Of a stretch of 64,000 bases of DNA, positions 30,065 through 63,466 are shown piece after piece. Position 1 is the stretch's first letter. Each line of letters begins with the position of its first letter. The stretch comes from Hamiltosporidium tvaerminnensis FI-OER-3-3 (Eukaryota > Fungi > Microsporidia). The notes under the pieces were generated by a model that made no database searches, was not told the origin of the DNA, and was given only the letters and a program-made list of their open reading frames with translations. The stretch covers positions 1,116,001 to 1,180,000 of the forward strand of contig JAKIMF020000004.1 of assembly GCA_022605425.2 (NCBI GenBank), written 5' to 3'. A program made the translations under genes and the position numbers.

Positions 30065-32528
30065 TTTTATTTAATAAAATTCTGGGTTAACAAATTTTTC
30101 TTTTTAAATAATTCTTTCCACCATTTCAACCACTTCTATCTCTTCCTCCAACTCCAACTCTTCATTTGTATTAGTTGTTGGTTCCTTTGCCGTGGTTATG
30201 CCATCCAAAATAAGGGGTAAAATATTTTTTGTATTTTCCGTTTTAACATCATCTTCCTCGTTGTCTCTTGCTTTAAAGGGGGTATTGGTTGTTTATGCAT
30301 CTCAGCTCCTAAGATAACACTTAATGATGCTCTCTCCCAGCTCTCCTCGGCATTTGGACCAGACTCAAGTCCTCTTCGTCGATCAAAAGAAATTGTTTCG
30401 ACTGTTTTCTTGAGTACTATGGATTGTATATATGCCTCTACATTCATGGGTATTTGCAGTCTCTTAACATACGTCTTATGGTATTTTGTCACAATACCGT
30501 CCCAGGTCATCACATAAGGAATTATCTCTACATTGCATTTATAAATAAGACTTAACTCATTTGCTAATAGGTCATACTTCCTAAGCTTCTCTGTTTCAAC
30601 TATTTGAAGAGAGTCTTGGGATGTGATTCCTACTTCAATGAGGGTTATCCTATTCTGTCTCTTGTCTAAAATAAATATATCTGGTCTGTTACACCAGATC
30701 TTGACATCAGTTTTTATTCTGGTGTCCACTCTTATCTCTGCATATTCGTTATCAAGAATTTCTTGAACTTAGTGGCTTCTAATTTGTTTCGAAGACTTAA
30801 ACTTATATTTATTCAGCAAGAGTAAATGTATACATCGTACCACTTCATTATGTCGTCTAGTATAGTCATGACCAAGCATTTTTTCACATCTCGTTGCTAA
30901 GTGATCAACAGTTTTCCTAGACTGGTTGCAGTGTTGACACATACCTTCTGCACCCCAGAATACATTTCTATCCTGGATATAACAGAACACTGCTTCATTA
31001 CGTGATCTTACACTTCCTTTCTTTAACCATCTTGAGGAGTCATTTACACTTACCAGCTCGTTATTTCTAGCGCTATATAACTTTGAATGTAGTTTTCGAT
31101 TTTTGATTTCGTTATATAGGTTAGCTAGTTGAGCTTCTTCCAATTTCTTTTTTGTGACTTCCTCTTCCAACCCGTATTTTATTTTTAAAAAGTTTTTAAT
31201 TAGTGAAAGGTGGGTTTTATTATTATTCTTAACCTTTAGGATTGCTGCTCTTCTGGTCGATGTATCTTTATGTTTTTCCAGACAATCCAAGAGTTGCAAA
31301 AGCATATGTTCGCTTTTTAACTCGACACTATGTAAACCTCTTCCAAGTTCTTTACGTGGAAGGTATAGACGTTCTTTGCATCCTGGGCGTAGAAGTATTT
31401 TGTTCTTTACTAGCACTGCACGCACCGCATCATCTAACTTAGAGAAGTCAGCCGGTTCTAGTCGGTGTACACTTATATGATAGTTTAGTAAAGAAATTGC
31501 ATGTTGATTAATGGCTTGAAATAAATTTCTTGCATTTAATCTCGTGCGACAAAGTCTTTCTACTCGTGCTATAAGTTTGGTCTGTACTTCCTCAAACGAC
31601 TTACTTGTTGGAATTCCTCTGCTATCTTCTATAATTCCAAGGTATTTATAAAAACCTATTCCTTCAAGAAGAGTAGCAGTATCTTCACAACATGGATCAT
31701 TAGTGGCTGACTTCTCTTTGTTAATTTCCAATCCTATATTATTCATAAACTTTTTAACCTCCTCTGTCATTTCTTCCAATGTTTGTCCATCTTCGGCAAG
31801 AAGCTTAAGATCATCAATAAACAAGAGATGATTAGTCGCGTGGGATTCTGCATCTGTCTTTATTGTCACTTTTGTGTATTTCTCATTAAGCTTTCGGCTC
31901 AATGGATCCATACACAACACAAACAATAATGGTGACAAACTATCTCCTTGCAGAATCCCTCTATCAATCTTCTTGCTCATAATTTTTTCAGGCCCTATTG
32001 ATATATCAATTTTCCATTTTGATATAATTACCTTAATAAATTTCAGGATCCAATCAGGTAAATTAAGGTTTTCAATACATTGAGTCAAATAAGCATGATC
32101 TATTGAATCATAAGCTTTTTTGACATCAATCCATGTTGCCTTAAGATTGTTTCCGTACTCCTTATTAATGGCAATATTCAATAGGGCCTGTTCTTTCGCT
32201 CCTTGCACTCCTCTTACTGCTCCCAACTGATTTTCTGAAAGTAATCCTCGTCTTTCCACCTCAACCTGAACCACTTTAGTGACACATTTTGTAGTCAGTT
32301 TATACAGGTTTGACATACAAGTTATTGGCCTGTAATCAGAGCCAGTCTTTGGTGTACCTTTAGGTATCAGATAAGTAAGTCCACAATAATACCAATCGGC
32401 TTGAGGCGTTCCTTCTAAACATATGGCTTTTACAATATCGTAAAGATATTTATGAAGGCTCGTAAGTTTCTTGATGTAAAAGTTATAAATACCATCAATT
32501 CCAGCGGCTTTCCAGTTAGGCAGCCAAT
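30065..32528 (-). mobile_element. 5'-truncated R4/Dong-like non-LTR retrotransposon (RT, CCHC, restriction-like endonuclease) with a 10-bp TSD
   Basis: RT motifs YRPITCMS, WIDVKKAYDS, GILQGDSLSPLLF, HLLFIDDLKL and YKYLG; CQHC...DHLATRC...RHN; RPDIFILD...IEV..T...K..KY. One in-frame stop at 30769-30771. TATAGTATAT is repeated at 30055-30064 and 32529-32538. Confidence 0.92.
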
Positions 32529-33169
32529 TATAGTATATAACAATATAAATATTATAATCAAATTCCACTGATACTTTATTTATATGAATGAAATAAAACA
32601 GATATTCACTAGCAAAATAAATTTTGGGTTTGTTGTAAATAAATTCACTAAATAGCAAACAAATAGATTTAGGTTACGACGTAGTTCCTAATAAATTGCC
32701 CTAATATAATCATTTAAAAATATAGTTATGAAATCTTTAATCTTGAAATTTTCATTAAATATAAATTTTTTTTAATCGAAATATTTGTGTAATAATCTTG
32801 TTATTGGGACAAATGAATATTAATAGAAATCAAATTATTTTGTCCTAATTTGGGTAAGAAGAATAATTTAAAAGACACTGTATAGAAATTATAAAATATT
32901 TTTAGTTATTTAAGAATTAAATTAAAAATATGGAAAAAACTACTGAAAATATTGACATTGATTTTCATTTACTACAATAATTTTTTTATATAGTTAATGC
33001 AATTTTGGACATTAATGTATTGAAAGGTATATGATTCTTGACTTTTTTTCTTACAAAATTATTTTATAATTTGAAAATTTATACAAAAAGAATGTTACTT
33101 GCTAATGTATAATGTGATAAATGTAATTTTCAAAATATCATAATTTACAGTTTATTTAAATAAATTGGT

Positions 33170-51286: not shown

Positions 51287-53722
51287 ATGATAATATTTCT
51301 TTCTTTTTTCATTTTTGCAATAAAATGCGAAATACTTGGAATTGACTATTCAGATGAAATGAGAACAGCTCAAAATATTCGATCTCGAAGAGTTGTATAC
51401 AAGATAAATGGAAGTTTATCGCGACCTACAATATTAGACCTTAAAGAAATGTCACCTACAAAATTCCTTTCTTATTTTACTATTGAAGACCTTTCAGATA
51501 TTTTTTGTTTTGAAAGTAAAGATTTGTGTGAAAAAGTTCCGTATTTAGTAATTTTAGAAAACAAAGAAAAACATTTTAAGATTCCTAGTTTAGAGTCACC
51601 TTTAAATTTTACAGCCTTAAATTTTCTTTTTGTTAAATATTTAAATCTGGAAAATAACAAATTTAAATGTGTTTTGTCAAAGCGATCTTATCTCACTAAA
51701 GAACAGTCCCAACAGTTGTTTCAGTCTTTTCATAAAGCAGATTACAAAGTTTCTATGGTTGTACCAGAATCTCTTTGTTTTCTAGCAGATTATATCTCAG
51801 CACTTCCCATTGAAACAGAAGAAGAAGTTAAGAAAAATAGTGAGAATGAAAAGAATGATGAGAAAACTGAGAATGAAGTTAAAGCCGACAGTGAAGTTAA
51901 AACTGAGAAAGATGAGAAAAGTGATAAAGAACAGAAAGATGAAAATGAAAAGAATGAAAAGAAAGATGAAAAAGAGAAAGACAATAATAAATACGAAGGA
52001 AGAAATTACCTTGTAATCTCTACAAGAGGTATAAAATCTGTATTTTCAATGTATTCAGTAAAAAAAACAGAAAAAAAAGTAAATTTTAAAAATTTATTTC
52101 ACCTCGAATCAGAAGATTTCAGTGACAAAACAATAAAATCAACATTTTACTCAATCGTAGAAGATATAACAGTAACCAATTTTAAAAAAGAATTTTTAGA
52201 ATCAAAAGGATCCTCAGTTGAAATACCAACCCTTATATGTTACCCAAGAGACAAAACAGTTACTCAAGAAAACAATAATTTTTTATTTTGTGATTTATCA
52301 AAAATAATAAAAAAAATAATTGAAGGAATCATAAGAAACGATGATATTTACAAACCTTTAGACATAAAAACCTACAATTTAAACAAAGAAGTTAAATTTG
52401 TGTTGTTTAACACATTTTTTGATTTAAAAGAAATAAAAAATATTTTTTTAAAAATTATTTTAGAAAAAAAAACAAAATTTGAAAATATAAAAGAAGAAAT
52501 AAAAAGTAAAATTGAAAATAAAGAATTTAAAACATTATTTTGTTCAAATTTTGTAGAAATGAAAATGTTCCAAAATATTTTTCCATTTTATTTTGAAACC
52601 AAGTATACCAATAAAGACAGTATTTCATTTGGTGCTGCGTATTTAGGAGAAAAGCATGTAAAAATACAAGACGAAAGAATTCTATATCCAACCTCAGACA
52701 CCTTATTTGGAAATTCCAAATCCAACAAAATAATTGAAAATGTTATTAAAGAAATTAAAATACGAAATGACTTTAAAAATACTCTTGAAAAATTTGAAGG
52801 CCAAAATCTTTTAAAAAATTTCAGTGAATTTTCTGACACAGAAATTGGTGAAATAATTGAAAAAGCAAAAAAACAATTTTCTAATTTAAAAGAAATGGAA
52901 AATTTTATTTCTTTAATAAAAAATAAAATTGAAGAAAATTCTAAACGAATCCGTGAAAAAGAAAGAAAAGCCAAAGAAATTGAAAGAAGAGGTGAAGGTG
53001 TTAAACAGTTAGACAATTTAATCTCAGAACTTGAAAAAGAGAATTTATTTGCAGACCTAGAAGATTTGAGTAAAGAGAGTATTTCTAAAGAAGATATAAA
53101 GGATCATAGTAAAGAAGATATCAGTAAAGATAATACTAACAAAGATAATACTACCAAAGATAATATTACCAAAGATAATATTAACAAAGAGAATACTACC
53201 AAAGAGAATATTAACAAATATAATATTAACAAAGAGAATATTAACAAAGAGAATATTATTAGAGATGTAAATACTACCATTCCTACTGATACCTCTACTA
53301 AAGAAGTAAAGAACATAGGAAGTGAACACCTTGTTGAACTTAGAGATGTATTTGTTAGTGTTAAGACTTGGTTTGAAAATAACAAAGAAAATAAAGAAAT
53401 CGGACATTCAGAATTCTTAAATCAGTTTGTTAATTTAAAATCAAAACATCGAATTATTACCACACGAATACAAAGAATGAAAGAAGAAAAAGAGAGAATT
53501 GAGAAAGAGAAGTTGGAGAAAGAGAAGTTGGAGAAAGAAGAGAAAGAAAAGGATAATAAAGGTAAGGATAATAAAGAGAAAGAAAAGGATAATAAAGAAA
53601 AGGATAATAAAGATAAAGAAAAAGAAAAGGAGAAAGAAGATATTCCAACTTTACCCTCTGAAGAAAATGAAGTCTTACCACCCTTTAATGAAACACCTTC
53701 TTTTGAAAAGACTGAGTTATAA
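51287..53722 (+). CDS. Divergent ER-luminal Hsp70-superfamily protein (Lhs1/Grp170-like)
   Basis: Signal peptide, ILGIDYS (Hsp70 phosphate-1-like), SISFGAAY (like EAVAxGAA), charged C-terminus ending KTEL. Confidence 0.7.
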   Translation: MIIFLSFFIFAIKCEILGIDYSDEMRTAQNIRSRRVVYKINGSLSRPTILDLKEMSPTKFLSYFTIEDLSDIFCFESKDLCEKVPYLVILENKEKHFKIPSLESPLNFTALNFLFVKYLNLENNKFKCVLSKRSYLTKEQSQQLFQSFHKADYKVSMVVPESLCFLADYISALPIETEEEVKKNSENEKNDEKTENEVKADSEVKTEKDEKSDKEQKDENEKNEKKDEKEKDNNKYEGRNYLVISTRGIKSVFSMYSVKKTEKKVNFKNLFHLESEDFSDKTIKSTFYSIVEDITVTNFKKEFLESKGSSVEIPTLICYPRDKTVTQENNNFLFCDLSKIIKKIIEGIIRNDDIYKPLDIKTYNLNKEVKFVLFNTFFDLKEIKNIFLKIILEKKTKFENIKEEIKSKIENKEFKTLFCSNFVEMKMFQNIFPFYFETKYTNKDSISFGAAYLGEKHVKIQDERILYPTSDTLFGNSKSNKIIENVIKEIKIRNDFKNTLEKFEGQNLLKNFSEFSDTEIGEIIEKAKKQFSNLKEMENFISLIKNKIEENSKRIREKERKAKEIERRGEGVKQLDNLISELEKENLFADLEDLSKESISKEDIKDHSKEDISKDNTNKDNTTKDNITKDNINKENTTKENINKYNINKENINKENIIRDVNTTIPTDTSTKEVKNIGSEHLVELRDVFVSVKTWFENNKENKEIGHSEFLNQFVNLKSKHRIITTRIQRMKEEKERIEKEKLEKEKLEKEEKEKDNKGKDNKEKEKDNKEKDNKDKEKEKEKEDIPTLPSEENEVLPPFNETPSFEKTEL

Positions 53723-53759: not shown

Positions 53760-55083
53760 ATTGTAATTTTTATATTATGTTTTATAGTAATTTTTATAGT
53801 ATTTCCTAGTAATATTTAGTAATCTTTATAGTATTTCTTAGTAATATTTCTAGTAATGATTATAGTCTTACATTCTAATATGCTCTAGTAATGATTATAG
53901 TAATTTTTATAGTAATTCCTAGCAATATTTAGTAATCCTTATAGTATTTCCTAGTAATATTTATCATTTAGTATCCACTTAACTGTTAAAGATATTGCAA
54001 AAATAACTTATTTACATCTAAAGTATGTAAAATACATAGATTATTTATATTAAACTTTATTATATAAATCATAGTTTCTCATCCTTCTAAATAATAATTT
54101 TACATTCTCTCTATATCTATACATATAATACTTCCTTAATATTTCATATCCAAATAAGTAATTACTCTTGAGTATCTTCCTATTTTATATTTAATTTGTT
54201 TAATTTACCATTTATACTTTTCTTCTTATATTCTTCTCTTCTTATATTCTTATATACTTCTATTCTTATATTTAATCTGTTTAATTTACCATTTATACTT
54301 CTATTCTTCTTTCTTATATTTTATATTTTATATTTTATATTTTATATTTTATATTCTTCTATTCTTCTATTCTTATATTTAATCTATTTAATTTACCATT
54401 TATACTTCTATTCTTCTCTTCTTATATTTTATATTTTATATTTTATATTTTATATTTTATATTTTATATTTTATATTTTATATTTTATATTCTTCTATTC
54501 TTCTATTCTTATATTTAATCTATTTAATTTACCATTTATTTTACTTACAATTAACATATATTTCTATGAAATGTACATATATTTCTATGAAATGTTTTTA
54601 TTTGTCAGAAAAAAATACTTTTCTTTTATTAAAGATATAATTCTTTTTCTTAAGATATAATTCTTTTTTTTAAGATATAATTCTTTTTTTTAAGATATAA
54701 TGTATTCTTAAGATATAATGTATTACTTAATTATATTTTTTTAAATAAATTATTATATTTTTTATAATTCTTACTTTATTTCTTACTTTAATTCTTACTT
54801 TAATTCTTACTTTATTTCTTACTTTATTTCTTACTTTAATTTATCAACTATCTTGACATTTAAACCAAATACCAATACAAATAACATTTACCAATAACAT
54901 TTACCAATACAACTTATAAATAACATATTAACAATACAACTTATAAATAACATATTATTAATACAACTTATAAATACAACTTATAAATAACATATTATAA
55001 ATAACATATTAACAATACAACTTATAAATAACATATTACCAATACAACTTATAAATAACATATTATTAATATCACCAATACAA
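53760..55083. repeat. Intergenic mosaic of minisatellites
   Basis: TAGTA-rich units (53780-53970), (TTTTATA)n with composite units (54180-54540), ~21-bp TTAAGATATAATTCTTTT (54630-54725), 12-bp TTCTTACTTTA(A/T) (54765-54840) and ~27-bp AATACAACTTATAAATAACATATT-containing units (54905-55070). Confidence 0.85.
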
Positions 55084-55227
55084 TTGATACACCCCTTTCT
55101 ACAATCACCTATCCAATATCCACACCCCTTTACTTTCTCCACCCCCTTTTACTTCCTCCACACCCCCTTTACCTCTCCACACCCCTTTTTTTTCACAAAT
55201 ATTAAAACCCACCAAAAAAGAAAAAGA

Positions 55228-58200
55228 ATGCAACCCGAAAAAAACACAGACACCAGATACAACACAGAAATAAAAAAGAAACTTGACGCTTTCAAAACAG
55301 CAAAACAATGGTCAGATTTCATATCACTCCTCTCTTCTTTAGACACAACCCTAAAGAAACACAACACAACATACATTCCCCACAAAACCCAACTATTCAA
55401 ACGTTTAAGCCAATGTCTAAACCCTGCACTACCATCAGGTGTCCATAACAAAGTACTTCAAACATACCACATCATTTTCCAAAAATTAGACACACAAAAT
55501 TTTATAAAAAACTTTAATTTATACACACTTGGTCTCTTCTCATTCTCTATTCATACACGTTTAATTCTTAAATCTCAATATGTAACACTTATCCATACAC
55601 ATATAATACCCCTTTCTCCATATTTACATCCATTTATAAGTAATATACTTTTAGGTATTTTACCTAATCTTGATGAAGAAAATACAGATCATTATTCTCA
55701 AGCACTTAAATGTCTTAAAGATTTACTTACTCTTATACCTTTACCTTTATTTAATACATCACTTTTTTATTTATTACAAACATGTACACACCTTAGACAA
55801 CCAATTACTAATTATTTAATTAAGTATTCTATACAATATAAAGTATATATTACATTACAAACTATTAAAGCATTTTCATATTCTTTAAAAGATAAAGAAA
55901 TATTTGTATTAAGAAGTATATTAGATATACTTATAATGAAATATAATCTTAAAAAGATACTAGAGTATAGTGGTGAGGGTAGTGGTGGTGTGGGTGGTGA
56001 GGGTGGTGATGTGGGTGATGTGGGTAATGATAAGAATAAGGATAGTAGTGGGGATAGTGATAAGGATATAGATAATAAGGATAACATAGATAATGATAAC
56101 ATAGATATTAGGGATAACATAGATATTAGGGATAACATAGATAATACCCCTATCATAGATAAGGATATTAAGGATATTATAAATACAGATGTTAAGGATA
56201 AAGAAAGAAATATGATTTTAGATATTTCATTTAAAGAGAATTACAATGGGGGTAATGATAGTGGTAATAACAAAGGGGATAATGATAATAGGGGTAATGT
56301 TTTAGGTAATAATGATATAGGTAATAATGATATAGGTAACGATACTTTAAATAACCCTTTAAATAACCCTTTAAATAACCCTTTAAATAACACTTTAAAT
56401 AACCCTTTAAATAAGGATACTATTACCAATAACACCCCTTTAAATAACAACAATACCAGTAATAATATCACCCTCCACTATATCGTTGATCTCTCTGTTA
56501 ATATACTTAAATTATTTTTAAAAAGAGATATTTCCTTAACAAAACGTGTTTATAGTTTTTATGAAATATCAGATTCTATAAACAAAACCTCTTTAAATAT
56601 AATATGTCTTAGTTTATATGAATTATTAAAAAGAAAAGATTTTATTTCTTTTTTTAAGATTATGATATGTCTTAGTGATAAGAAAGATGTATGTGATAGT
56701 GTATTGTTATTAATAACACCATATTACCTATATAGGATATATGAGGTGTATGGAGTGGTGGAGGGTTATATGGGTGATATAGGTGATATTAGTTATATGG
56801 GTTATATGGGTGATATAAGTAATAGAATAGGTGATAGTAATAGAATAGGTGATAGTAATAGAATGGGTGATAGGTTAGAGAATAACCCTACTACTAACAA
56901 CCATTATACCAACAATACTACTAACAATACATCTAACCCTTATACCAACAACCCATACAACAACCTTATAAATATTAATGTAGATGTTCTTAAGTATGTT
57001 AATCTCTTTCATGATACTGTTGAAGTATCTTTTATATGGAAATTAGTTATAACATCCTTTATAAAGAGAATAAAGGGTATATGTAATGAAGAGGGTGATA
57101 TAGGTGATGAAGAGGGTGATAGTAGTTATAAGGGTGATGTAAAGGGTGATAGTGATAGTAGTGGTAGTGATAGTAGTGATAGTGGTATAGGTGATAGGGG
57201 TAGTAGTTATAAGGGTGATAATAAGTATAAAGATATAAGACATATAAATAACAGTACTAACAATAACCCTACTATTACTAATACTTATACTAACAGTACT
57301 AACCCTTATACTAATAATACTAATAACCCTAATACTAACCCCAACCCCACCCCTACCCCTACTAATAATACTACCCCTTATACTAACACACCCTCCACCC
57401 TTATTACCCCCCTACCTCTTAACCATTTTATTTATGTTTTATCTTTTTTTATTAACAACTTTAATTTCTGTGATAAAGAGGTGTTAGAAATACATATTTT
57501 ATTTTTATTTTATTTATGTTTAAAATATAAAAAGTATTTTAAAAAAGAAGAATTAACAGTATTTTTATTATTATGCATAGAGAGAATGGAGTGGTGTTGT
57601 GATAGTGGAGGTAGTGGTGATAGTGGTAGTGATATAGGTGGAGGTAGGGATGTGGGTAGTGGTAATATAGGTAATATAAGTAATATAAGTAATATAGGTA
57701 GTATAGGGTGTTATAGTGCTAGTAGTATAAGTGATATGTATAACACTATAAATGATAGTATAAATGATAACAGTATAAGGGATAAGAAAAATAAAGATAT
57801 AAATACTAAGAATACTAAGAAAAATAAGAATATAAATAATAAGAAAAATAAGGATAATAAGGATAATAATAATAACAATACTAACAATAATAAACATATC
57901 AATACTAACAATACTAACAATACCAATACTAACACACATAATATCAACCAACATAATAACAACACACATAAAAACATTGATAGTCTTAACTCTCTTCATA
58001 TTTCTATTTTTAATTATTATGAAGGTGTTAATGATAGTATTATTAATAATTTAGATATTGTTTATGTAGGGTGTTATTTATTAATATTAGGGTTTTTTAA
58101 AGATAAAAAGAATTTTCATTTTTATAATTTAATTTTAGTAAAATATTTAGAGAGAATGGGTGTGGGTAAGGGTGATAGGGGGGAGGGTGATAGTAGTAGT

Positions 58201-61200
58201 AGTAGGGGTAAGGGTTATAATAACACTAGTATAAATAATAACCCTAGTATAAATATAAATAACCCTAGTATAACTAATAACCCTTATACTAAACATATAA
58301 ATAATACCCCTTATATAAATAACCCTTATATAAATAATAACCCTTATAACCCTTATATAACTAATATAAATAACACACACATTACACCCTCCCCCATTAC
58401 ACCTCTACCTTTATCCTTCTTACATTTATATTTTAATATAATATTACAAGGTAGTGTTAATGAATTAGAAAATTCTTTAAAAATATTTAAAAATTATAAA
58501 TTAGAAGGGTTTTATTCATTAGAATTATTTAAAAAATTATGGAATAATTTTAATTTTAGAATGTGTTATTTATTATATGAATTTAATATTTTATATTGTT
58601 GTATATTTGAGAGGTATGTTATTATAAGGTTAAGTGGTATAAGTAATAACATAGAGTATTACAGTAGGGATTTAGATGATAGTATGTGTGATAGTGATAT
58701 TATGTGTGATGGTGATAGTATATGTGATAGTGATAAGAATTTAGATAATAGTAATAAGAATTATAAGAGTAGTAGTAATAAGAGTAATAAGAGTAATAGT
58801 AATAGTTATAAGAATAAGAGTAATAAGAATAAGAGTAGTAACAACCAATATAATAACAAATACACTAACCAATATACTAACCAACATACTAGTAACAAAT
58901 ACACTGATGTCTATAAAACTTCTAATCTTTTACTTTTTATTATAAATGTTTTAAGAAGTGAAGAGTTATACTTTATGGATGCATTTGTATATTTAAACAG
59001 GATATTAAGAGAGAGTATGTGGTATAAGGGTAATGATAGAGATATTAGGTATAAGGGTGATATTAGAGATACTATAAGAGATAACAGTAATACTATAAGA
59101 GATATAAATTATAAGGGTGATATTAGAGATACTAATAATAACATTAATACTATAAGAGATAACAGTAATAATATAAGAGATACTTATAATAACACACCAT
59201 CATATAACACACCATCATATAACACCCTATCATATAACACACCACCTAATATATCTAACACATCAGATGCTAATATCTTTCTTACTTGTTTGAAAAGAAT
59301 AAAACACTTTAATTCTATTTATAAATTTATATTAAATAAATTAAAGAATGCATGTATAGAAAGTAAAGAAGGATATTATTATGATATTATAGAATATGAT
59401 ATAGTATATGGAGTATTTGATTGTTTAATTAATATGTTTGAGTATTGTAATGAGTTTATTATTTTTTTAAGAAGTAGTGTGTATGTACAGGGTGATGGGT
59501 TTATGGTGTTTCTTAATAATGGGGTTGTTAATGTTAGAAAGGTTTTATTTTCTAGTTTTTTGTATTTTGTTATCAACGATGTTAAATGTGATTTAGGGTG
59601 TGGGGATGGAGGGTGTGGGTGTGAGTGTGGTGATGGAGGGTGTTATAGTAAGGATAGTAATTATAAGGATAGTAATTATAAGGATAATACTAAGGATAGT
59701 AATTATAAGGATAGTAATACTAAGGATAATGATTCTAACAATACTGACAATACTACTTACAATACTAACAATACTAATAACTATAACTATACTAATAACA
59801 ATACTAACTATAACAACTATAACAACTATAACAACCATCCAAATTATCCAAATACTAATACTAATTATCCAAATAATCACTTGTCTGAGATACGTAGAGT
59901 ACGTTTGATGGCTTTGTTTTTAATTTCTAAAATGGTAGATTTAAATATGTTAGAATCTCAAGAAATAATATCTTATGATTTAAATCCTTTTATTTCTTTT
60001 ATAATAAAAAATATAAATGATGTGTTAATTGTATGGGAATGTTTACCTTTATTAAAAATATTAACAGGTAATGAACAATGGGTGAATATTTATTTTAAAA
60101 AGGTGTTTGAATTTTTAGTTGTGTATTTTTCTAAGAAATATTCTTTTTTTATTTTTGAGATTTTAAATATAGAATTAAGGAATAAGGTTGTTCGTGAGGT
60201 GGTGAGTAGTAATATGTTGTGGGATATGGATGTTTGTGTGGTACAGGGGTATTTTTCTTATGTTTTTGGGAATAAAGAATATTTTGGGGATGTTCTTGAG
60301 AAATTGGTGTGTGGGTGTTTTAGGTATGTTGAGGGTAAAGTTGGAGGAGGAATAAGAAATTATGATATTTTAATAGGTGGTAGTATAGGTTATGTAGGTA
60401 ATAGGGAGATAGTAGAGGAATTAAAGGATAGTAAAGAAATAAAGGATGTAAATGATATAAGAAAGGATGTAAAGGATAAGAATAGAGAGATAAAGGATAT
60501 AAGAAGGGAAGTAAGGGGTAACAAGGAGATAGTAGAGGATAAGAATAGAGATGTAAAGGATAACAATAGAGATTTAAATGAATTAAGAAAGGATAATAAA
60601 GAAATAAAGGAATTAAGGGATGTAAGGGGTAACAATAGGGATTTAAATGATATAAGAAGGGATGTAAAGGATAAGAATAGAGAAATTAAGGAATTAAGAA
60701 AGGATAAGAATAAAGAAATAAATGATGTAAAGAAAACCCCTAAAACCCTACTAAATGATGTTCTTTATGATAAATATTCTACTTCTTATATGTTTACAGG
60801 GTTAAATATAAAAGAAACTTCTAATTTTATTTGTATGGATTCTTTAATAGAAGAATTTAAAAATATAAATTTTAAGAAATGTGTAGATTTAAATGTAGAA
60901 CCTTATATTTTACTTTTAGATTTTATATTTTTAAAAGAAAATATTTTATTTGCTAAATGTCTTTTAAATTTTAAATGTGAATCTATAATTTTAGAATTAA
61001 ATTCTTCAAAATTAAATCTTTATATGATTTATTTAGAAAAATTTAATAAAAATATAGAAATATTTCCTTTTTTATGTAAAATAGAGGAAAGTTTTAGTGA
61101 GGAAAGGATTTTAGTAATTTTAGAACAAAGTATTAATATTTTAAATATTATGTTTTTAGGGAAGAGTAAGAATGGAAATTTAAAACATTATATTTGGTTT

Positions 61201-62271
61201 TTAAATTTGATTTGTAAAATTAAAATGAATAAAATTACAGATAGAATTATTGAGATTGTAATTAGAATTTTAGAAAATTCTTTTACTGTTTTTTTACGTA
61301 CATTAGATTTACCAAATAAAAAGAAAGAAAATAAAGATATTTTACTTTTAATTAAAGTAATACGAAATATTTTAGAAAATATAAATATTGAAAGATATTC
61401 TTTATTGTTTAATAATGTTGTGTATGGGTTGTTGAGACAAAGGAATTATTTGTATTCTGAGTCTTTGGGTATTTTGGGGCTTTTAAAGAATTGGAAAAAA
61501 GATTTTTTTGATTTTTTTTGTGATCAAAAGTTTTTTAACGATTCGTATGAAAATATTTTGATAAAAAAGAATTTAATTTGTTCTTTTTTTTCTAGTGAAT
61601 ATGAGAAGATAGATGAGTTGTATAATCGTATGGAACAGGGATTCTTTGTTTCTAAAGAAACTGATTCTTTAAACAAATGTTCTATAATTAGAAGAATAGC
61701 TTTTCTTGTGTTTTGTTTGGATAAAAAAATTATTTATTCTAAATTTCCACCAATTATAGAAATAATAAGTGAATTTATTACGAATACATCTTCAAATATA
61801 AAGAAAGAAATAATTTTTTTAATCAAAATTATTTTAATAAAAATTGATACTGAAAAGCTTTCACATTTATGGCCTTTAATTTTTTGTGAAATATTTAATG
61901 AAAAAGAAGATTTAGAAGTTGAATGTGAGACTGTACGGCTTATTGATATTATATTTACTTTTAATTTAGAAGAAACAGTTGAAATGTTATGTGATTATGT
62001 TGGAGGTGTTGTTGTTAATGATAGTGAATTAAATTCTTCGTTTGTTCATTATTTAAGTTTGAAGAGTGGTGATGAACAGAGTCGGTGTGAAATTAAGTTT
62101 GAAGATAAAATTGTACCGCTGTGTAAATTTATTGATGTTAAAAGTAAAAGTGATTTGAAATGGTTTTATGAGAATTGTAATCAATATTTTACAGAAGCAA
62201 GAATTTTTGGAAGGGAGGTGGATTATGAATGGATAGAAGATAATGTATTATATGAGTTTATAGAGAAGTAG
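55228..62271 (+). CDS. DOP1: Dopey/DOP1 (Golgi-endosome trafficking scaffold) with nine low-complexity insertions
   Basis: Dopey_N signature WSDFISLLSSL...KRLSQCLNPALPSGVHNKVLQTY and C-terminal HLWPLIFCE. First ATG is at 55228, downstream of a CCC motif. Confidence 0.9.
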   Translation: MQPEKNTDTRYNTEIKKKLDAFKTAKQWSDFISLLSSLDTTLKKHNTTYIPHKTQLFKRLSQCLNPALPSGVHNKVLQTYHIIFQKLDTQNFIKNFNLYTLGLFSFSIHTRLILKSQYVTLIHTHIIPLSPYLHPFISNILLGILPNLDEENTDHYSQALKCLKDLLTLIPLPLFNTSLFYLLQTCTHLRQPITNYLIKYSIQYKVYITLQTIKAFSYSLKDKEIFVLRSILDILIMKYNLKKILEYSGEGSGGVGGEGGDVGDVGNDKNKDSSGDSDKDIDNKDNIDNDNIDIRDNIDIRDNIDNTPIIDKDIKDIINTDVKDKERNMILDISFKENYNGGNDSGNNKGDNDNRGNVLGNNDIGNNDIGNDTLNNPLNNPLNNPLNNTLNNPLNKDTITNNTPLNNNNTSNNITLHYIVDLSVNILKLFLKRDISLTKRVYSFYEISDSINKTSLNIICLSLYELLKRKDFISFFKIMICLSDKKDVCDSVLLLITPYYLYRIYEVYGVVEGYMGDIGDISYMGYMGDISNRIGDSNRIGDSNRMGDRLENNPTTNNHYTNNTTNNTSNPYTNNPYNNLININVDVLKYVNLFHDTVEVSFIWKLVITSFIKRIKGICNEEGDIGDEEGDSSYKGDVKGDSDSSGSDSSDSGIGDRGSSYKGDNKYKDIRHINNSTNNNPTITNTYTNSTNPYTNNTNNPNTNPNPTPTPTNNTTPYTNTPSTLITPLPLNHFIYVLSFFINNFNFCDKEVLEIHILFLFYLCLKYKKYFKKEELTVFLLLCIERMEWCCDSGGSGDSGSDIGGGRDVGSGNIGNISNISNIGSIGCYSASSISDMYNTINDSINDNSIRDKKNKDINTKNTKKNKNINNKKNKDNKDNNNNNTNNNKHINTNNTNNTNTNTHNINQHNNNTHKNIDSLNSLHISIFNYYEGVNDSIINNLDIVYVGCYLLILGFFKDKKNFHFYNLILVKYLERMGVGKGDRGEGDSSSSRGKGYNNTSINNNPSININNPSITNNPYTKHINNTPYINNPYINNNPYNPYITNINNTHITPSPITPLPLSFLHLYFNIILQGSVNELENSLKIFKNYKLEGFYSLELFKKLWNNFNFRMCYLLYEFNILYCCIFERYVIIRLSGISNNIEYYSRDLDDSMCDSDIMCDGDSICDSDKNLDNSNKNYKSSSNKSNKSNSNSYKNKSNKNKSSNNQYNNKYTNQYTNQHTSNKYTDVYKTSNLLLFIINVLRSEELYFMDAFVYLNRILRESMWYKGNDRDIRYKGDIRDTIRDNSNTIRDINYKGDIRDTNNNINTIRDNSNNIRDTYNNTPSYNTPSYNTLSYNTPPNISNTSDANIFLTCLKRIKHFNSIYKFILNKLKNACIESKEGYYYDIIEYDIVYGVFDCLINMFEYCNEFIIFLRSSVYVQGDGFMVFLNNGVVNVRKVLFSSFLYFVINDVKCDLGCGDGGCGCECGDGGCYSKDSNYKDSNYKDNTKDSNYKDSNTKDNDSNNTDNTTYNTNNTNNYNYTNNNTNYNNYNNYNNHPNYPNTNTNYPNNHLSEIRRVRLMALFLISKMVDLNMLESQEIISYDLNPFISFIIKNINDVLIVWECLPLLKILTGNEQWVNIYFKKVFEFLVVYFSKKYSFFIFEILNIELRNKVVREVVSSNMLWDMDVCVVQGYFSYVFGNKEYFGDVLEKLVCGCFRYVEGKVGGGIRNYDILIGGSIGYVGNREIVEELKDSKEIKDVNDIRKDVKDKNREIKDIRREVRGNKEIVEDKNRDVKDNNRDLNELRKDNKEIKELRDVRGNNRDLNDIRRDVKDKNREIKELRKDKNKEINDVKKTPKTLLNDVLYDKYSTSYMFTGLNIKETSNFICMDSLIEEFKNINFKKCVDLNVEPYILLLDFIFLKENILFAKCLLNFKCESIILELNSSKLNLYMIYLEKFNKNIEIFPFLCKIEESFSEERILVILEQSINILNIMFLGKSKNGNLKHYIWFLNLICKIKMNKITDRIIEIVIRILENSFTVFLRTLDLPNKKKENKDILLLIKVIRNILENINIERYSLLFNNVVYGLLRQRNYLYSESLGILGLLKNWKKDFFDFFCDQKFFNDSYENILIKKNLICSFFSSEYEKIDELYNRMEQGFFVSKETDSLNKCSIIRRIAFLVFCLDKKIIYSKFPPIIEIISEFITNTSSNIKKEIIFLIKIILIKIDTEKLSHLWPLIFCEIFNEKEDLEVECETVRLIDIIFTFNLEETVEMLCDYVGGVVVNDSELNSSFVHYLSLKSGDEQSRCEIKFEDKIVPLCKFIDVKSKSDLKWFYENCNQYFTEARIFGREVDYEWIEDNVLYEFIEK

Positions 62272-62274
62272 AAT

Positions 62275-62620
62275 AGAATTGAGGATTAAGTTAGGGATAG
62301 AGAGTTATGTTAGGATAGAGAGTTATAAGGAAGTAGAGTAAAGTTGGAAGTAAAGTATTATAACGAAGTAGTGTAAAGTTGGAAGTAGAGTATTATATGG
62401 AGATGTAGTGTCTTATAATGAGGTAGTATTATAATGAGTAGAGCAGTATAACGAAGTAGTATTATAAGGAGTAGAGTATTATAAGGGGGTAGAGTAAAGT
62501 TGGAAGTAAAGTATTATAAGGAGTAAAGTATTATAATTAGGTAGAAGCATTATAACGAAGTAGAATTATAAGGAAGTAAAGTATTATAAGGAAGTTAAAT
62601 CGGGTGACTGGTTATATAAG
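62275..62620. repeat. G-rich degenerate minisatellite 3' of DOP1
   Basis: Recurrent AGTATTATAAGGAAGTAG and GTAAAGTTGGAAG units. Confidence 0.75.
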
Positions 62621-63257
62621 AGATATAGAGACAGTCATGAGTAGATAAAGGGATGTATGGGTTAATGAGATGTATGGTTTTACAGAGGTAGAATGAAATA
62701 GAGGTTTAAAGAGAAGTAGGTGTATATTATGATTAAAGGGTTTTGATTATAGTTTTTCTCTTTTAAATATTTAGTTCATGTCTGTTTTGAAAAACCGTTT
62801 TTTTTTAAATTTAAATTACAAATTAAATTTATTTTCCTTAGATGAATATTCTTTTCTAGGATTTTGAATTGATTTTCTAAGAAATATTCTTTTCTAGGAT
62901 TTTAAATTGATTTCCTAATAAATTTTATTTATAATTTTAATCTCTTATAAATTAAATGATTTTCTAGGATTTTAATCTCTTATAAATTAAATGATTTTCT
63001 AGCTCGTGGTAATGAAATTAGTTTATATTTCAGAAAAAATAAAGTGTTTTATCTTCTTAAACTTATTTGATTAAACTATAATTTCTTTATCTTTTTATTT
63101 AAATTTTTATACCTTTATCTGATGTGTTTTATTAGAATATTTTGATTTTTAAAATTTTCATTTTTAGTTGTTCTTGTGTGATTTACTGTTAAAATTTATT
63201 ACATGTTTGTATATTTCTCTTCTGTTTTATTTATATTGTATTTTTTAGTGAAATCTT

Positions 63258-63466
63258 GGTATTTTATATTTATTCTGTATAGTTTAATATATTTTTTAAT
63301 TACATTCCTTCTTTCTGGTTGGTATTTTATATTTATTCTGTATGGTTTAATATATATTTTAATTACATTCTTTCTTTCTGGTTGGTATTTTATATTTATT
63401 CTGTATGGTTTAATATATATTTTAATTACGTTCCTTCTTTCTTTCTGGTTGGTATTTATTCGTATG
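63258..63466. repeat. About 3.3 copies of a 63-bp tandem repeat
   Basis: GGTATTTTATATTTATTCTGTAT starts at 63258, 63321 and 63384, with a partial copy at 63451. Confidence 0.85.

Follow-up and report, generated by a model that had tools for sequence, protein, structure and literature searches.

Nine G-then-C inserts in the DOP1 gene of Hamiltosporidium tvaerminnensis look like the footprint of mutation on one DNA strand rather than excised RNA hairpins

The DOP1 gene and its inserts

The window, by which we mean the whole 64,000-nucleotide stretch that was analysed, carries the DOP1/Dopey gene of the Daphnia parasite Hamiltosporidium tvaerminnensis, a housekeeping gene present in one copy in the genome (Table 1). 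Its nine inserts measure 82-172 aa (246-516 nt) each and make up about 1000 aa together (1002 codons), and they are absent from other microsporidian DOP1 proteins. Three independent runs (DNA, judging by their long contigs) carry the inserts, and therefore we do not consider them an assembly artefact.

Table 1. DOP1 and the features around it (positions in the window)
Feature	Position	Strand	Remarks
Upstream 811-aa gene within the skew field	51287..53722	+	four-fold sites C27:G5; last 300 nt G-rich
5' flank C arm	54050..55227	.	C 0.41 directly before the ATG; tandem ACACCCC; repeat periods 7, 20, 27, 19
DOP1/Dopey gene	55228..62271	+	2347 aa; ten conserved blocks and nine inserts; domains Dopey_N, DOP1_C
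C-biased start of conserved Dopey_N block	55228..55600	+	NNY codons C:T 22:7 (first 300 nt); residues shifted to H, T, P, Q
Insert 1	55966..56481	+	switch near 56341; in-frame length polymorphism
Insert 2	56740..56988	+	switch near 56884
Insert 3	57088..57420	+	switch near 57241
Insert 4	57580..57987	+	switch near 57868
Insert 5	58156..58407	+	switch near 58219; 11-nt perfect pair; sole insert folding beyond local shuffles
Insert 6	58666..58911	+	switch near 58840
Insert 7	59014..59271	+	switch near 59182
Insert 8	59581..59886	+	switch near 59734; two copies of a 14-nt word common to the genome-wide repeat family
Insert 9	60319..60756	+	nearly all G arm, C arm 24 nt; edges least certain
Last conserved block	60757..62271	+	silent sites C-depleted: NNY C:T 3:159, four-fold G14:C0
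3' flank G arm	62272..62740	.	G ~0.3, C 0.02; no C-rich partner after it

Judging by the sequence, the inserts are most likely translated, because the frame is open, indels come in multiples of three, and most inserts occupy loop positions between helices. As originally noted, the frame is open throughout, with no in-frame stop where about 95 are expected (minimum 60 in 2000 shuffles). Indels of 3, 15 and 36 nt separate isolates and indels of 21 and 30 nt separate species, all in frame; the repeat periods within inserts are likewise multiples of three, while those of the flanks are not. Placed on the Astathelohania orthologue, inserts 1-4 and 6-8 fall between its predicted helices, with 5 and 9 ambiguous. 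The inserts are thus in frame, hydrophilic, Asn-rich, built by tandem duplication and polymorphic by whole codons, as low-complexity loop insertions are. That they are lineage-specific hydrophilic loops between the helices of the DOP1 solenoid is shown or nearly so, and the same can be said of their lengthening and shortening through short in-frame tandem duplications.

Homologue searches with the C-terminal block and inserts 6-8 gave no match, and comparison with H. magnivora is therefore confined to the first 90 codons of insert 1. Here the outer G arm differs at 9 of 93 sites, against 2 of 154 synonymous sites in block 1 (p=0.003), and G is involved in eight of the nine differences. Polymorphisms at the inserts are too few and too unpolarised to give a direction of mutation.

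Plasmodium proteins, in an AT-rich genome, carry Asn-rich low-complexity insertions that are in-frame, hydrophilic, slippage-built, length-polymorphic and located in surface loops. The DOP1 inserts share the in-frame, hydrophilic, slippage-built, loop and length-polymorphic traits, as well as the AT-rich parasite genome, yet we know of no fixed G-then-C order or strand-symmetric bracket in the Plasmodium insertions. Searching the literature on microsporidian or Plasmodium inserts, we found no account of polarity, and only one precedent, the Asn-rich in-frame expansions of Hamiltosporidium MCM proteins, whose nature (intein or harmless expansion) was left open (Haag et al. 2020, PMC6944219). 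Like the DOP1 inserts, these occur in the same genus, are in frame and Asn-rich, and split conserved motifs; unlike in our description of DOP1, G/C polarity, shared words and silent-site skew go unmentioned there.

Strand polarity at the locus and a genome-wide repeat family

All nine inserts run from a G-rich to a C-rich arm, as originally described. Pooled over the inserts, the G arms contain G at 0.29 and C at 0.02, and the C arms C at 0.26 and G at 0.02. Purines make up 0.70 of the G arms vs 0.47 of the C arms, and a bias of transitions only is rejected on this ground. Codon choice follows the arms, with AAG:AAA at 55:13 in G arms vs 289:1434 in the background, and AAC:AAT at 67:65 in C arms vs 14:77 in G arms. 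With the flanks of the gene included, C arms and G arms number ten each, such that every conserved block is bracketed; the two flank arms, which lie outside the gene, are unpaired. The arms bracket conserved blocks, and so the cassette is the wrong unit.

In 100-nt windows the skew attains values of plus or minus 1.0, and it recurs ten times within one ORF; G density is 0.45 where an arm meets its block and drops to about 0.2 further in. It enters the blocks themselves: the halves of blocks 2-9 differ (G,C = 97,46 vs 143,23, p=2e-4), and replacements at conserved columns run toward C in aa 1-160 (19 vs 5) and toward G in blocks 8-9 (19 vs 4). Among 27 other ORFs, the two same-strand neighbouring genes have the most extreme four-fold skews, one in either direction (p=6e-11), and the downstream gene is G-biased already in its first 300 nt. 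Since the skew is found at silent sites, at conserved residues and in both neighbours, it must act on DNA. A DNA-level, strand-asymmetric bias, whereby each strand running 5' to 3' away from a conserved block is G-rich and C-poor, is thus as good as demonstrated. A helix-capping preference (Gly after helices, Pro/Thr/Asn before them) might seed the order, but leaves silent sites and flanks unaccounted for, and was rejected. On a larger scale, the 14-kb island as a whole forms the opposite field, C-left/G-right, and the nearest field beyond it has the opposite order, while ordinary genes of this genome show weak gene-end skew only.

The original prediction suggested scanning the genome for such switches. 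The composition switch of DOP1 is far beyond chance and has no second instance in the 264 kb sampled; the pattern is a genome-wide class (752 vs 218 word pairs). That the inserts share words with a genome-wide repeat family is established, or close to it. Words and spacers of this family are common to different chromosomes, and a 14-mer of DOP1 has 73 copies in the genome vs 1 for the control. Family units place a G core and then a C core exactly 30 nt apart in 206 strand-matches, against 81 in the reverse order and 0 in controls, with in-register GGG/CCC core swaps within the 30-nt units. Family loci other than DOP1, MCM among them, are known from count searches and snippets of 35-80 nt. In DOP1 itself, AAG-GGT and AAC-CCT lie in the same codon frame, canonical cores are few, and inserts 6 and 9 are polar without them.

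Foldback transposons and MITEs, and head-to-head telomere fusions, resemble the locus in having modular G-rich then C-rich arms, and a 35-nt hairpin is central in the family arrays. Here, however, the arms repeat each other directly with the core exchanged and are not inverted copies. No insert has the long terminal inverted repeats of a foldback element: the 25 longest inverted repeats all extend beyond a single insert, and a G-for-C swap fits the arms better than the reverse complement. A search for Tc1/mariner-type ends revealed no family, the 29 matches to TA-CAGGGTG being scattered and without common continuation.

RNA stems, break repair and other explanations

The original prediction had seen fold-back cassettes with complementary words in their arms, and allowed two classes of explanation: RNA stem-loops serving excision, bypass or pausing, or the footprint of a strand-symmetric expansion or mutation process. 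At the positions it gave, eight of its nine word pairs are exact reverse complements, as is the TGTATGG pair, while TATGAGG/CCTTATA requires a G-U pair. Its caveat about chance short matches was well placed, the longest match per insert equalling that of codon-shuffled arms for all but insert 5 (11 nt, nominal p=0.027 among nine). In a whole-arm swap test, arms paired with their own partners no better than with swapped partners (p=0.33), and arm-to-arm likeness is greater under G-for-C exchange on one strand than under reverse complementation. Inserts 2-5 do fold better than arm-wise shuffles (z -1.7 to -3.9), but only insert 5 clearly beats local codon shuffles. Nor is pairing at the edges partner-specific: with alignment-defined edges, 0 of 16 edge tests gave p<0.05, vs 4 of 16 with edges like those of the prediction. 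Given the lack of partner-specific pairing, the eight inserts folding no better than local codon shuffles, the strong signs of reading-frame selection and the two unpaired arms outside the gene, the stem-loop class is not supported; the second class is supported, and the interpretation overall is thus partly supported.

Removal of the inserts via edge stems, as non-canonical introns or bypass elements, is barely credible. The protein without them would be about the size of the 1314-aa Astathelohania orthologue, but the open frame, the whole-codon indels and periods, the want of a shared edge motif, and an Iso-Seq annotation that holds short introns only, none confirmed in DOP1, all argue against it. 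Microsporidian spliceosomal introns are about 20-70 nt long, with GT..AG ends and a conserved donor; the inserts far exceed this length, have no common edge motif, are not among the Iso-Seq confirmed introns and, as originally noted, show no GTAAGT in 55900-60800. The swap and edge tests above lend no support to a hairpin-defined intron. Bypass of the T4 gene 60 type has a stop codon after the take-off codon, then a non-coding gap, and no stop occurs in the insert codons. An intein, which carries a Hint domain and has splicing residues at either end, was rejected too, the inserts being low-complexity sequence without shared ends or any Pfam match. Long "skip" joints in reads were not taken for excision, as they rest on 21-31 letters of repeat and derive from other loci; the read comparison covered the locus outside the repeats at 57264-57374, 57491-57524 and 57780-57811, and the one RNA-type run contained zero parasite reads. 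An Rfam search of the locus gave no match, and a sigma-70 promoter scan, irrelevant to this locus, gave chance-level matches. That generic G:C stems in the mRNA are selected because they delay ribosomes between helical modules or make the message more stable is improbable. Seven of the nine inserts are predicted to close on themselves, and the arm-wise shuffles and the four edge tests point the same way; on the other hand, alignment-defined edges fail, both arms are A-rich and would pair in either order, and the bias extends over the upstream flank (very likely untranscribed) and the neighbouring genes.

The best explanation, which we hold tentatively, is repeated repair of double-strand breaks inside the inserts. 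At human meiotic break hotspots, the exposed strand to the left of a break shows C>G and A>G changes and the right side shows the complementary ones, with off-centre peaks, insertion bias, tandem duplications and template switching (Hinch et al. 2023, PMC7615360). The inserts would be recurrent break sites, at which resection would expose the top strand to the left and the bottom strand to the right; damage and error-prone fill-in would convert C and A to G, and also C to T, on the exposed strand, leaving a G-rich left arm and a C-rich right arm with off-centre peaks. Slippage and template switching during repair synthesis may add tandem copies in the middle and bring in units of similar arrays from other places, with orientation always kept, while selection would retain only in-frame, stop-free, hydrophilic outcomes. 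Most speculatively, longer repair-synthesis tracts could yield the opposite field of the 14-kb island. In composition only, the inserts match the hotspot pattern, in which the forward strand gains G to the left of the centre and C to the right, peaks lie off centre and insertions are in excess. At human hotspots, moreover, rare variants are slightly in excess across 1-2 kb, whereas DOP1 shows fixed composition over 100-400 nt of coding DNA at putative breaks. Break repair is favoured by the skew at silent sites and conserved residues, the G gradient along the arms, the G-related divergence of insert 1 from H. magnivora, the in-frame indels and the family words common to several chromosomes. 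The genome contains one Y-family polymerase gene, not identified as Rev1, and no Ku was found in it. Several observations count against break repair: the 340-630 nt saw-tooth requires single-strand tracts below about 250 nt, vs 1-2 kb in human hotspots; order is reversed in the field nearest to the island, and the G arm of the 3' flank lacks a C counterpart; and the in-register GGG/CCC swaps resemble micro-inversion or expansion of a small hairpin seed more than point mutation.

The main rival, possible though somewhat unlikely, is an extreme form of fungal gene-boundary skew (5' C, 3' G) recurring at every insert edge, the inserts being spacer-like, nucleosome-poor DNA with cryptic starts both ways, built on the microsporidian CCC initiator word. 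In unicellular fungi, gene starts are C-rich and gene ends G-rich with A and T little changed, and amino acids, four-fold sites, promoters and 3' UTRs are affected (McLean and Tirosh 2011, PMC3315797). DOP1 matches this in its 5' C and 3' G bias, silent sites, flanks and little-changed A and T; moreover, many ordinary ATGs of this genome follow an ACCC, and so do ATGs in orthologous DOP1 genes, the CCC motif is described in PMC2803860, and the true DOP1 promoter is shaped like an internal C arm. Against it stand nine internal reversals instead of one monotonic gradient, a skew of full amplitude that is limited to islands and comes with repeat expansion, the weak skew of ordinary genes, a downstream gene G-biased from its start, and C arms without a following ATG; expansion and hypermutability are left unexplained. 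A minisatellite family might instead have been seeded by the 35-nt hairpin with AGGGTGTT and AACACCCT ends, slippage copying the G-core unit to the left and the C-core unit to the right, which would give polarity at no cost on either strand, and a sequence-specific DNA-binding factor may keep the core. The 30-nt core spacing, the shared spacers, the common codon frame and the 14-mer copies speak for this; but it is strained as a sole cause, and unlikely as such, given the few canonical cores in DOP1, the polar core-free inserts, and the lack of a route to silent-site skew in blocks or neighbouring genes. Such seeding is probably true for part of the family and is compatible with break repair. 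Skew from a fixed replication origin in the island, with local reversals where forks stall or meet at inserts, would suit the opposite extremes of the two neighbours, but a stochastic origin zone predicts a smooth gradient and not a 500-nt saw-tooth, and we consider it very improbable. Healing of both break ends by telomerase, with head-to-head fusion of the healed ends, is more improbable still: the orientation is that of fused telomeres, C arms contain TAACCCT 15 times and the genome encodes TERT, yet the locus has no tandem telomere units, only six single TTAGGG and three single CCCTAA, and silent-site skew is unaccounted for.

It is conceivable, though we remain doubtful, that the inserts are self-perpetuating break hotspots in essential genes. 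As a protein-free class of element, they would grow through being repaired and pass units from locus to locus without any change of orientation. Strand by strand, they would also remodel the silent sites and conserved residues in the host gene and in its neighbours.

Implications for Hamiltosporidium

Within one reading frame the C-to-G bracket occurs ten times, and therefore this locus separates gene ends from skew. It thus offers a direct test both of the unexplained 5'-C/3'-G bias of fungi and of the origin of low-complexity insertions in parasites, for which Iso-Seq and population datasets are publicly available. The structure of the inserts also accounts for the breaks of short-read drafts in such genes and for the false long introns of gene predictors. 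For one gene, our results answer the question of Haag et al. on Hamiltosporidium expansions: the DOP1 inserts are most likely loops of the translated protein rather than inteins or introns, with a previously unreported property, a fixed strand polarity strong enough to alter conserved residues.

DOP1 inserts and their reading frame

Microsporidian DOP1 orthologues have 1314-1850 residues, without the inserts. A G-rich arm followed by a C-rich arm had been noted for each insert, and this order holds for all nine (246-516 nt). Pooled G arms contain A 0.41, T 0.28, G 0.29 and C 0.02, and pooled C arms A 0.45, T 0.26, C 0.26 and G 0.02. This saw-tooth is absent from the DOP1 loci of Astathelohania, Spraguea and Conglomerata, and is therefore lineage-specific; none was seen at other loci in 264 kb scanned of the same chromosome. 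Insert 1, at least, is common to H. tvaerminnensis and H. magnivora, and contigs from three other sequencing runs also carry the inserts.

The reading frame had also been described as open, and the inserts indeed contain no in-frame stop, against 95 expected from shuffled bases, with 90 and 335 stops in the other two frames. With a single weak exception, repeat periods inside the inserts are divisible by three, while those in the DOP1 flanks include 7, 17, 19, 20 and 35. Insert 1 varies in length by 3, 15 and 36 nt among isolates, and by 21 and 30 nt between H. magnivora and H. tvaerminnensis. Inserts 1-4 and 6-8 are predicted to fall between helices of a compact orthologue, and none of the 98 introns (mean 28 nt) of an Iso-Seq study is confirmed in the DOP1 gene (PMC10542269). 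The open frame, the multiple-of-three periods and indels, the loop positions and the lack of a confirmed intron together argue strongly that the inserts would be translated. The inserts failed tests of whether they are introns, bypass elements, inteins, foldback transposons or telomere fusions.

Features of the DOP1 region (window coordinates unless prefixed), of L002 (positions just past the window end), and of G000, the whole genome searched (C, contig)
Feature	Location	Strand	Description
DOP1 gene	55228-62271	+	2347 aa; Dopey_N and DOP1_C domains
Upstream ORF	51287-53722		811 aa; hydrophobic N-terminus; C-biased four-fold sites; G-rich KEK tail, then short C-rich end; no match in Pfam search
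15-nt tandem array	53126-53258		within the 811-aa ORF
63-nt tandem repeat	63256-63442		three copies, 95%; shortly past the 3' G arm end
Retroelement ORF	30769-32658		reverse transcriptase
Amino-acid transporter gene (Aa_trans)	L002:21-1223		downstream neighbour; four-fold sites G27:C1 over entire length, no insert
Telomerase gene	G000:C4:420294		at most 3 kb from a dense repeat-family island (422959-431764)
Family arrays	G000:C9:94999-95453; C12:2469179-2469513		C and G cores repeated every 60-90 nt
Island pair	G000:C1:1170700-1172664; C1:1266669-1268286		near-identical, opposite orientation: inverted segmental duplication
Y-family polymerase gene	G000:C2:1519168-1519677		single copy; 539-aa frame

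Polarity of arms, codons and neighbouring genes

Two further arms lie in the flanks of DOP1, the tenth C arm on the 5' side and the tenth G arm on the 3' side; no C partner follows the latter. G density is 0.45 at the block edge and declines outward within 120-150 nt to about 0.2; the C arms show the mirror image of this profile. One rule covers all twenty arms: on whichever strand leads 5' to 3' out of a conserved block, G is plentiful and C scarce. The unit at DOP1 is a conserved block bracketed by arms.

The compositional bias works through point changes on DNA. Lysine codons AAG:AAA stand at 55:13 in G arms versus 289:1434 elsewhere, and asparagine codons AAC:AAT at 67:65 in C arms versus 14:77 in G arms. 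Within conserved sequence, C:T counts at the ends of NNY codons are 22:7 over the first 300 nt and 3:159 for the last block, with a background of 907:3824; in blocks 2-9, composition differs between the first half and the second (p=2e-4). Replacements at conserved columns run 19 to 5 toward C codons in residues 1-160, and 19 to 4 toward G codons in blocks 8-9. Internal C arms are followed directly by no more than a weak C excess, so a gene-scale gradient dominates inside blocks. The same-strand genes flanking DOP1 have the most extreme four-fold skews among 27 other ORFs (C27:G5 upstream, G27:C1 downstream). Against H. magnivora, the outer G arm of insert 1 differs at 9 of 93 sites and block 1 synonymous sites at 2 of 154, a roughly sevenfold faster divergence that repeat misalignment may inflate.

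A genome-wide repeat family

DOP1-type polarity is a genome-wide class. Across 21,638,905 bases in 17 contigs, AGGGT lies 170-200 nt ahead of ACCCT in 752 cases, versus 218 in the reverse order (controls 81 and 66), and these pairs cluster into islands; at 400-430 nt the orders are equal (108 versus 102), as the saw-tooth predicts. Many arrays consist of 30-nt direct units with a GGG or CCC core in the same register, with an imperfect hairpin of 35 nt as the central unit. Strand-matches of core units number 206 with G first and 81 with C first (controls 0). The C9 and C12 arrays resemble products of the duplication of a two-unit block.

DOP1, the sole locus analysed in full (other family loci were viewed as snippets), is a degenerate member of this family. 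Canonical cores are scarce in it; a 14-nt word from insert 8 recurs in 73 copies across family arrays versus 1 in the control, and AAG-GGT and AAC-CCT occupy one codon frame.

Fold-back, mechanism and significance

The complementary words listed in the original prediction are present in DOP1, one pairing only via G-U, but the selected, partner-specific stems they suggested are not supported. Insert 5 alone clearly out-folded its ten-codon block shuffles (z -2.8), the remaining eight giving z -1.4 to +0.9; with 40 arm-wise codon shuffles each, inserts 4 (z -2.7) and 5 (z -3.9) stood out. With all G arms paired against all C arms, own partners did no better than swapped ones (p=0.33); the perfect matches of greatest length (13-14 nt) join different inserts. 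Of 16 edge-window pairing tests, 4 reached p<0.05 with edges near those originally proposed, a partly circular choice, and none of the 16 did so with edges from alignment gaps; none of the 25 longest inverted repeats is contained within a single insert. The inserts should fold, just like any G-rich stretch beside a C-rich one. The arms resemble each other more by same-strand G-for-C exchange than by reverse complement (5-mer cosine 0.73 versus 0.40; codon similarity 0.79 versus at most 0.41), with a narrower gap for words with two or more C (0.55 versus 0.44). This is partly due to protein constraint, since true reverse complements of G arms would be 22-54% hydrophobic and contain stops.

Our best guess, a tentative one drawn from composition, is that break repair may have caused both polarity and expansion. 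At human break hotspots it is the forward strand that is single-stranded left of the break; on this exposed strand C>G and A>G changes arise, with peaks off-centre, and there is a surplus of insertions made by tandem duplication and template switching; the DOP1 inserts are alike in side, mutation types, profile and expansion (PMC7615360). The single Y-family polymerase gene, the absence of a Ku match in the genome search and a weak Spo11-like match are permissive for break repair, not proof of it. A Y-family gene is missing from Encephalitozoon; Encephalitozoon cuniculi is reported to be without Rev1 and Rad30. Break repair has weak points: it requires short single-strand tracts at DOP1, the field over the whole island runs in the opposite order to the inserts, and in-register core swaps call for micro-inversion or a hairpin seed.

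The strongest rival, possible but less likely, is fungal gene-boundary skew (PMC3315797) acting on inserts that resemble spacers; the unchanged A and T of the arms and the CCC initiator word agree with it. Expansion of seed repeat units accounts for the family arrays but fails to account for the silent sites, and we think it rather unlikely. Selected RNA stems fit less well and are improbable, replication origin effects, also fitting less well, slightly more so; we give very little credence to telomerase, and equally little to excision of the inserts or ribosome bypass, both poorer fits.

The only earlier published trace of such inserts that we found is a remark on Asn-rich MCM expansions in Hamiltosporidium (PMC6944219). 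Among the eleven MCM matches in the genome are identical-scoring copies on C13 (three) and C3 (two). Open frames of only 490 and 560 aa in some of the matches may be broken or mis-polished. The DOP1 inserts show all testable features of a low-complexity loop insertion, and work like one. What is new is their fixed G-then-C polarity, which reaches conserved codons and neighbouring genes.
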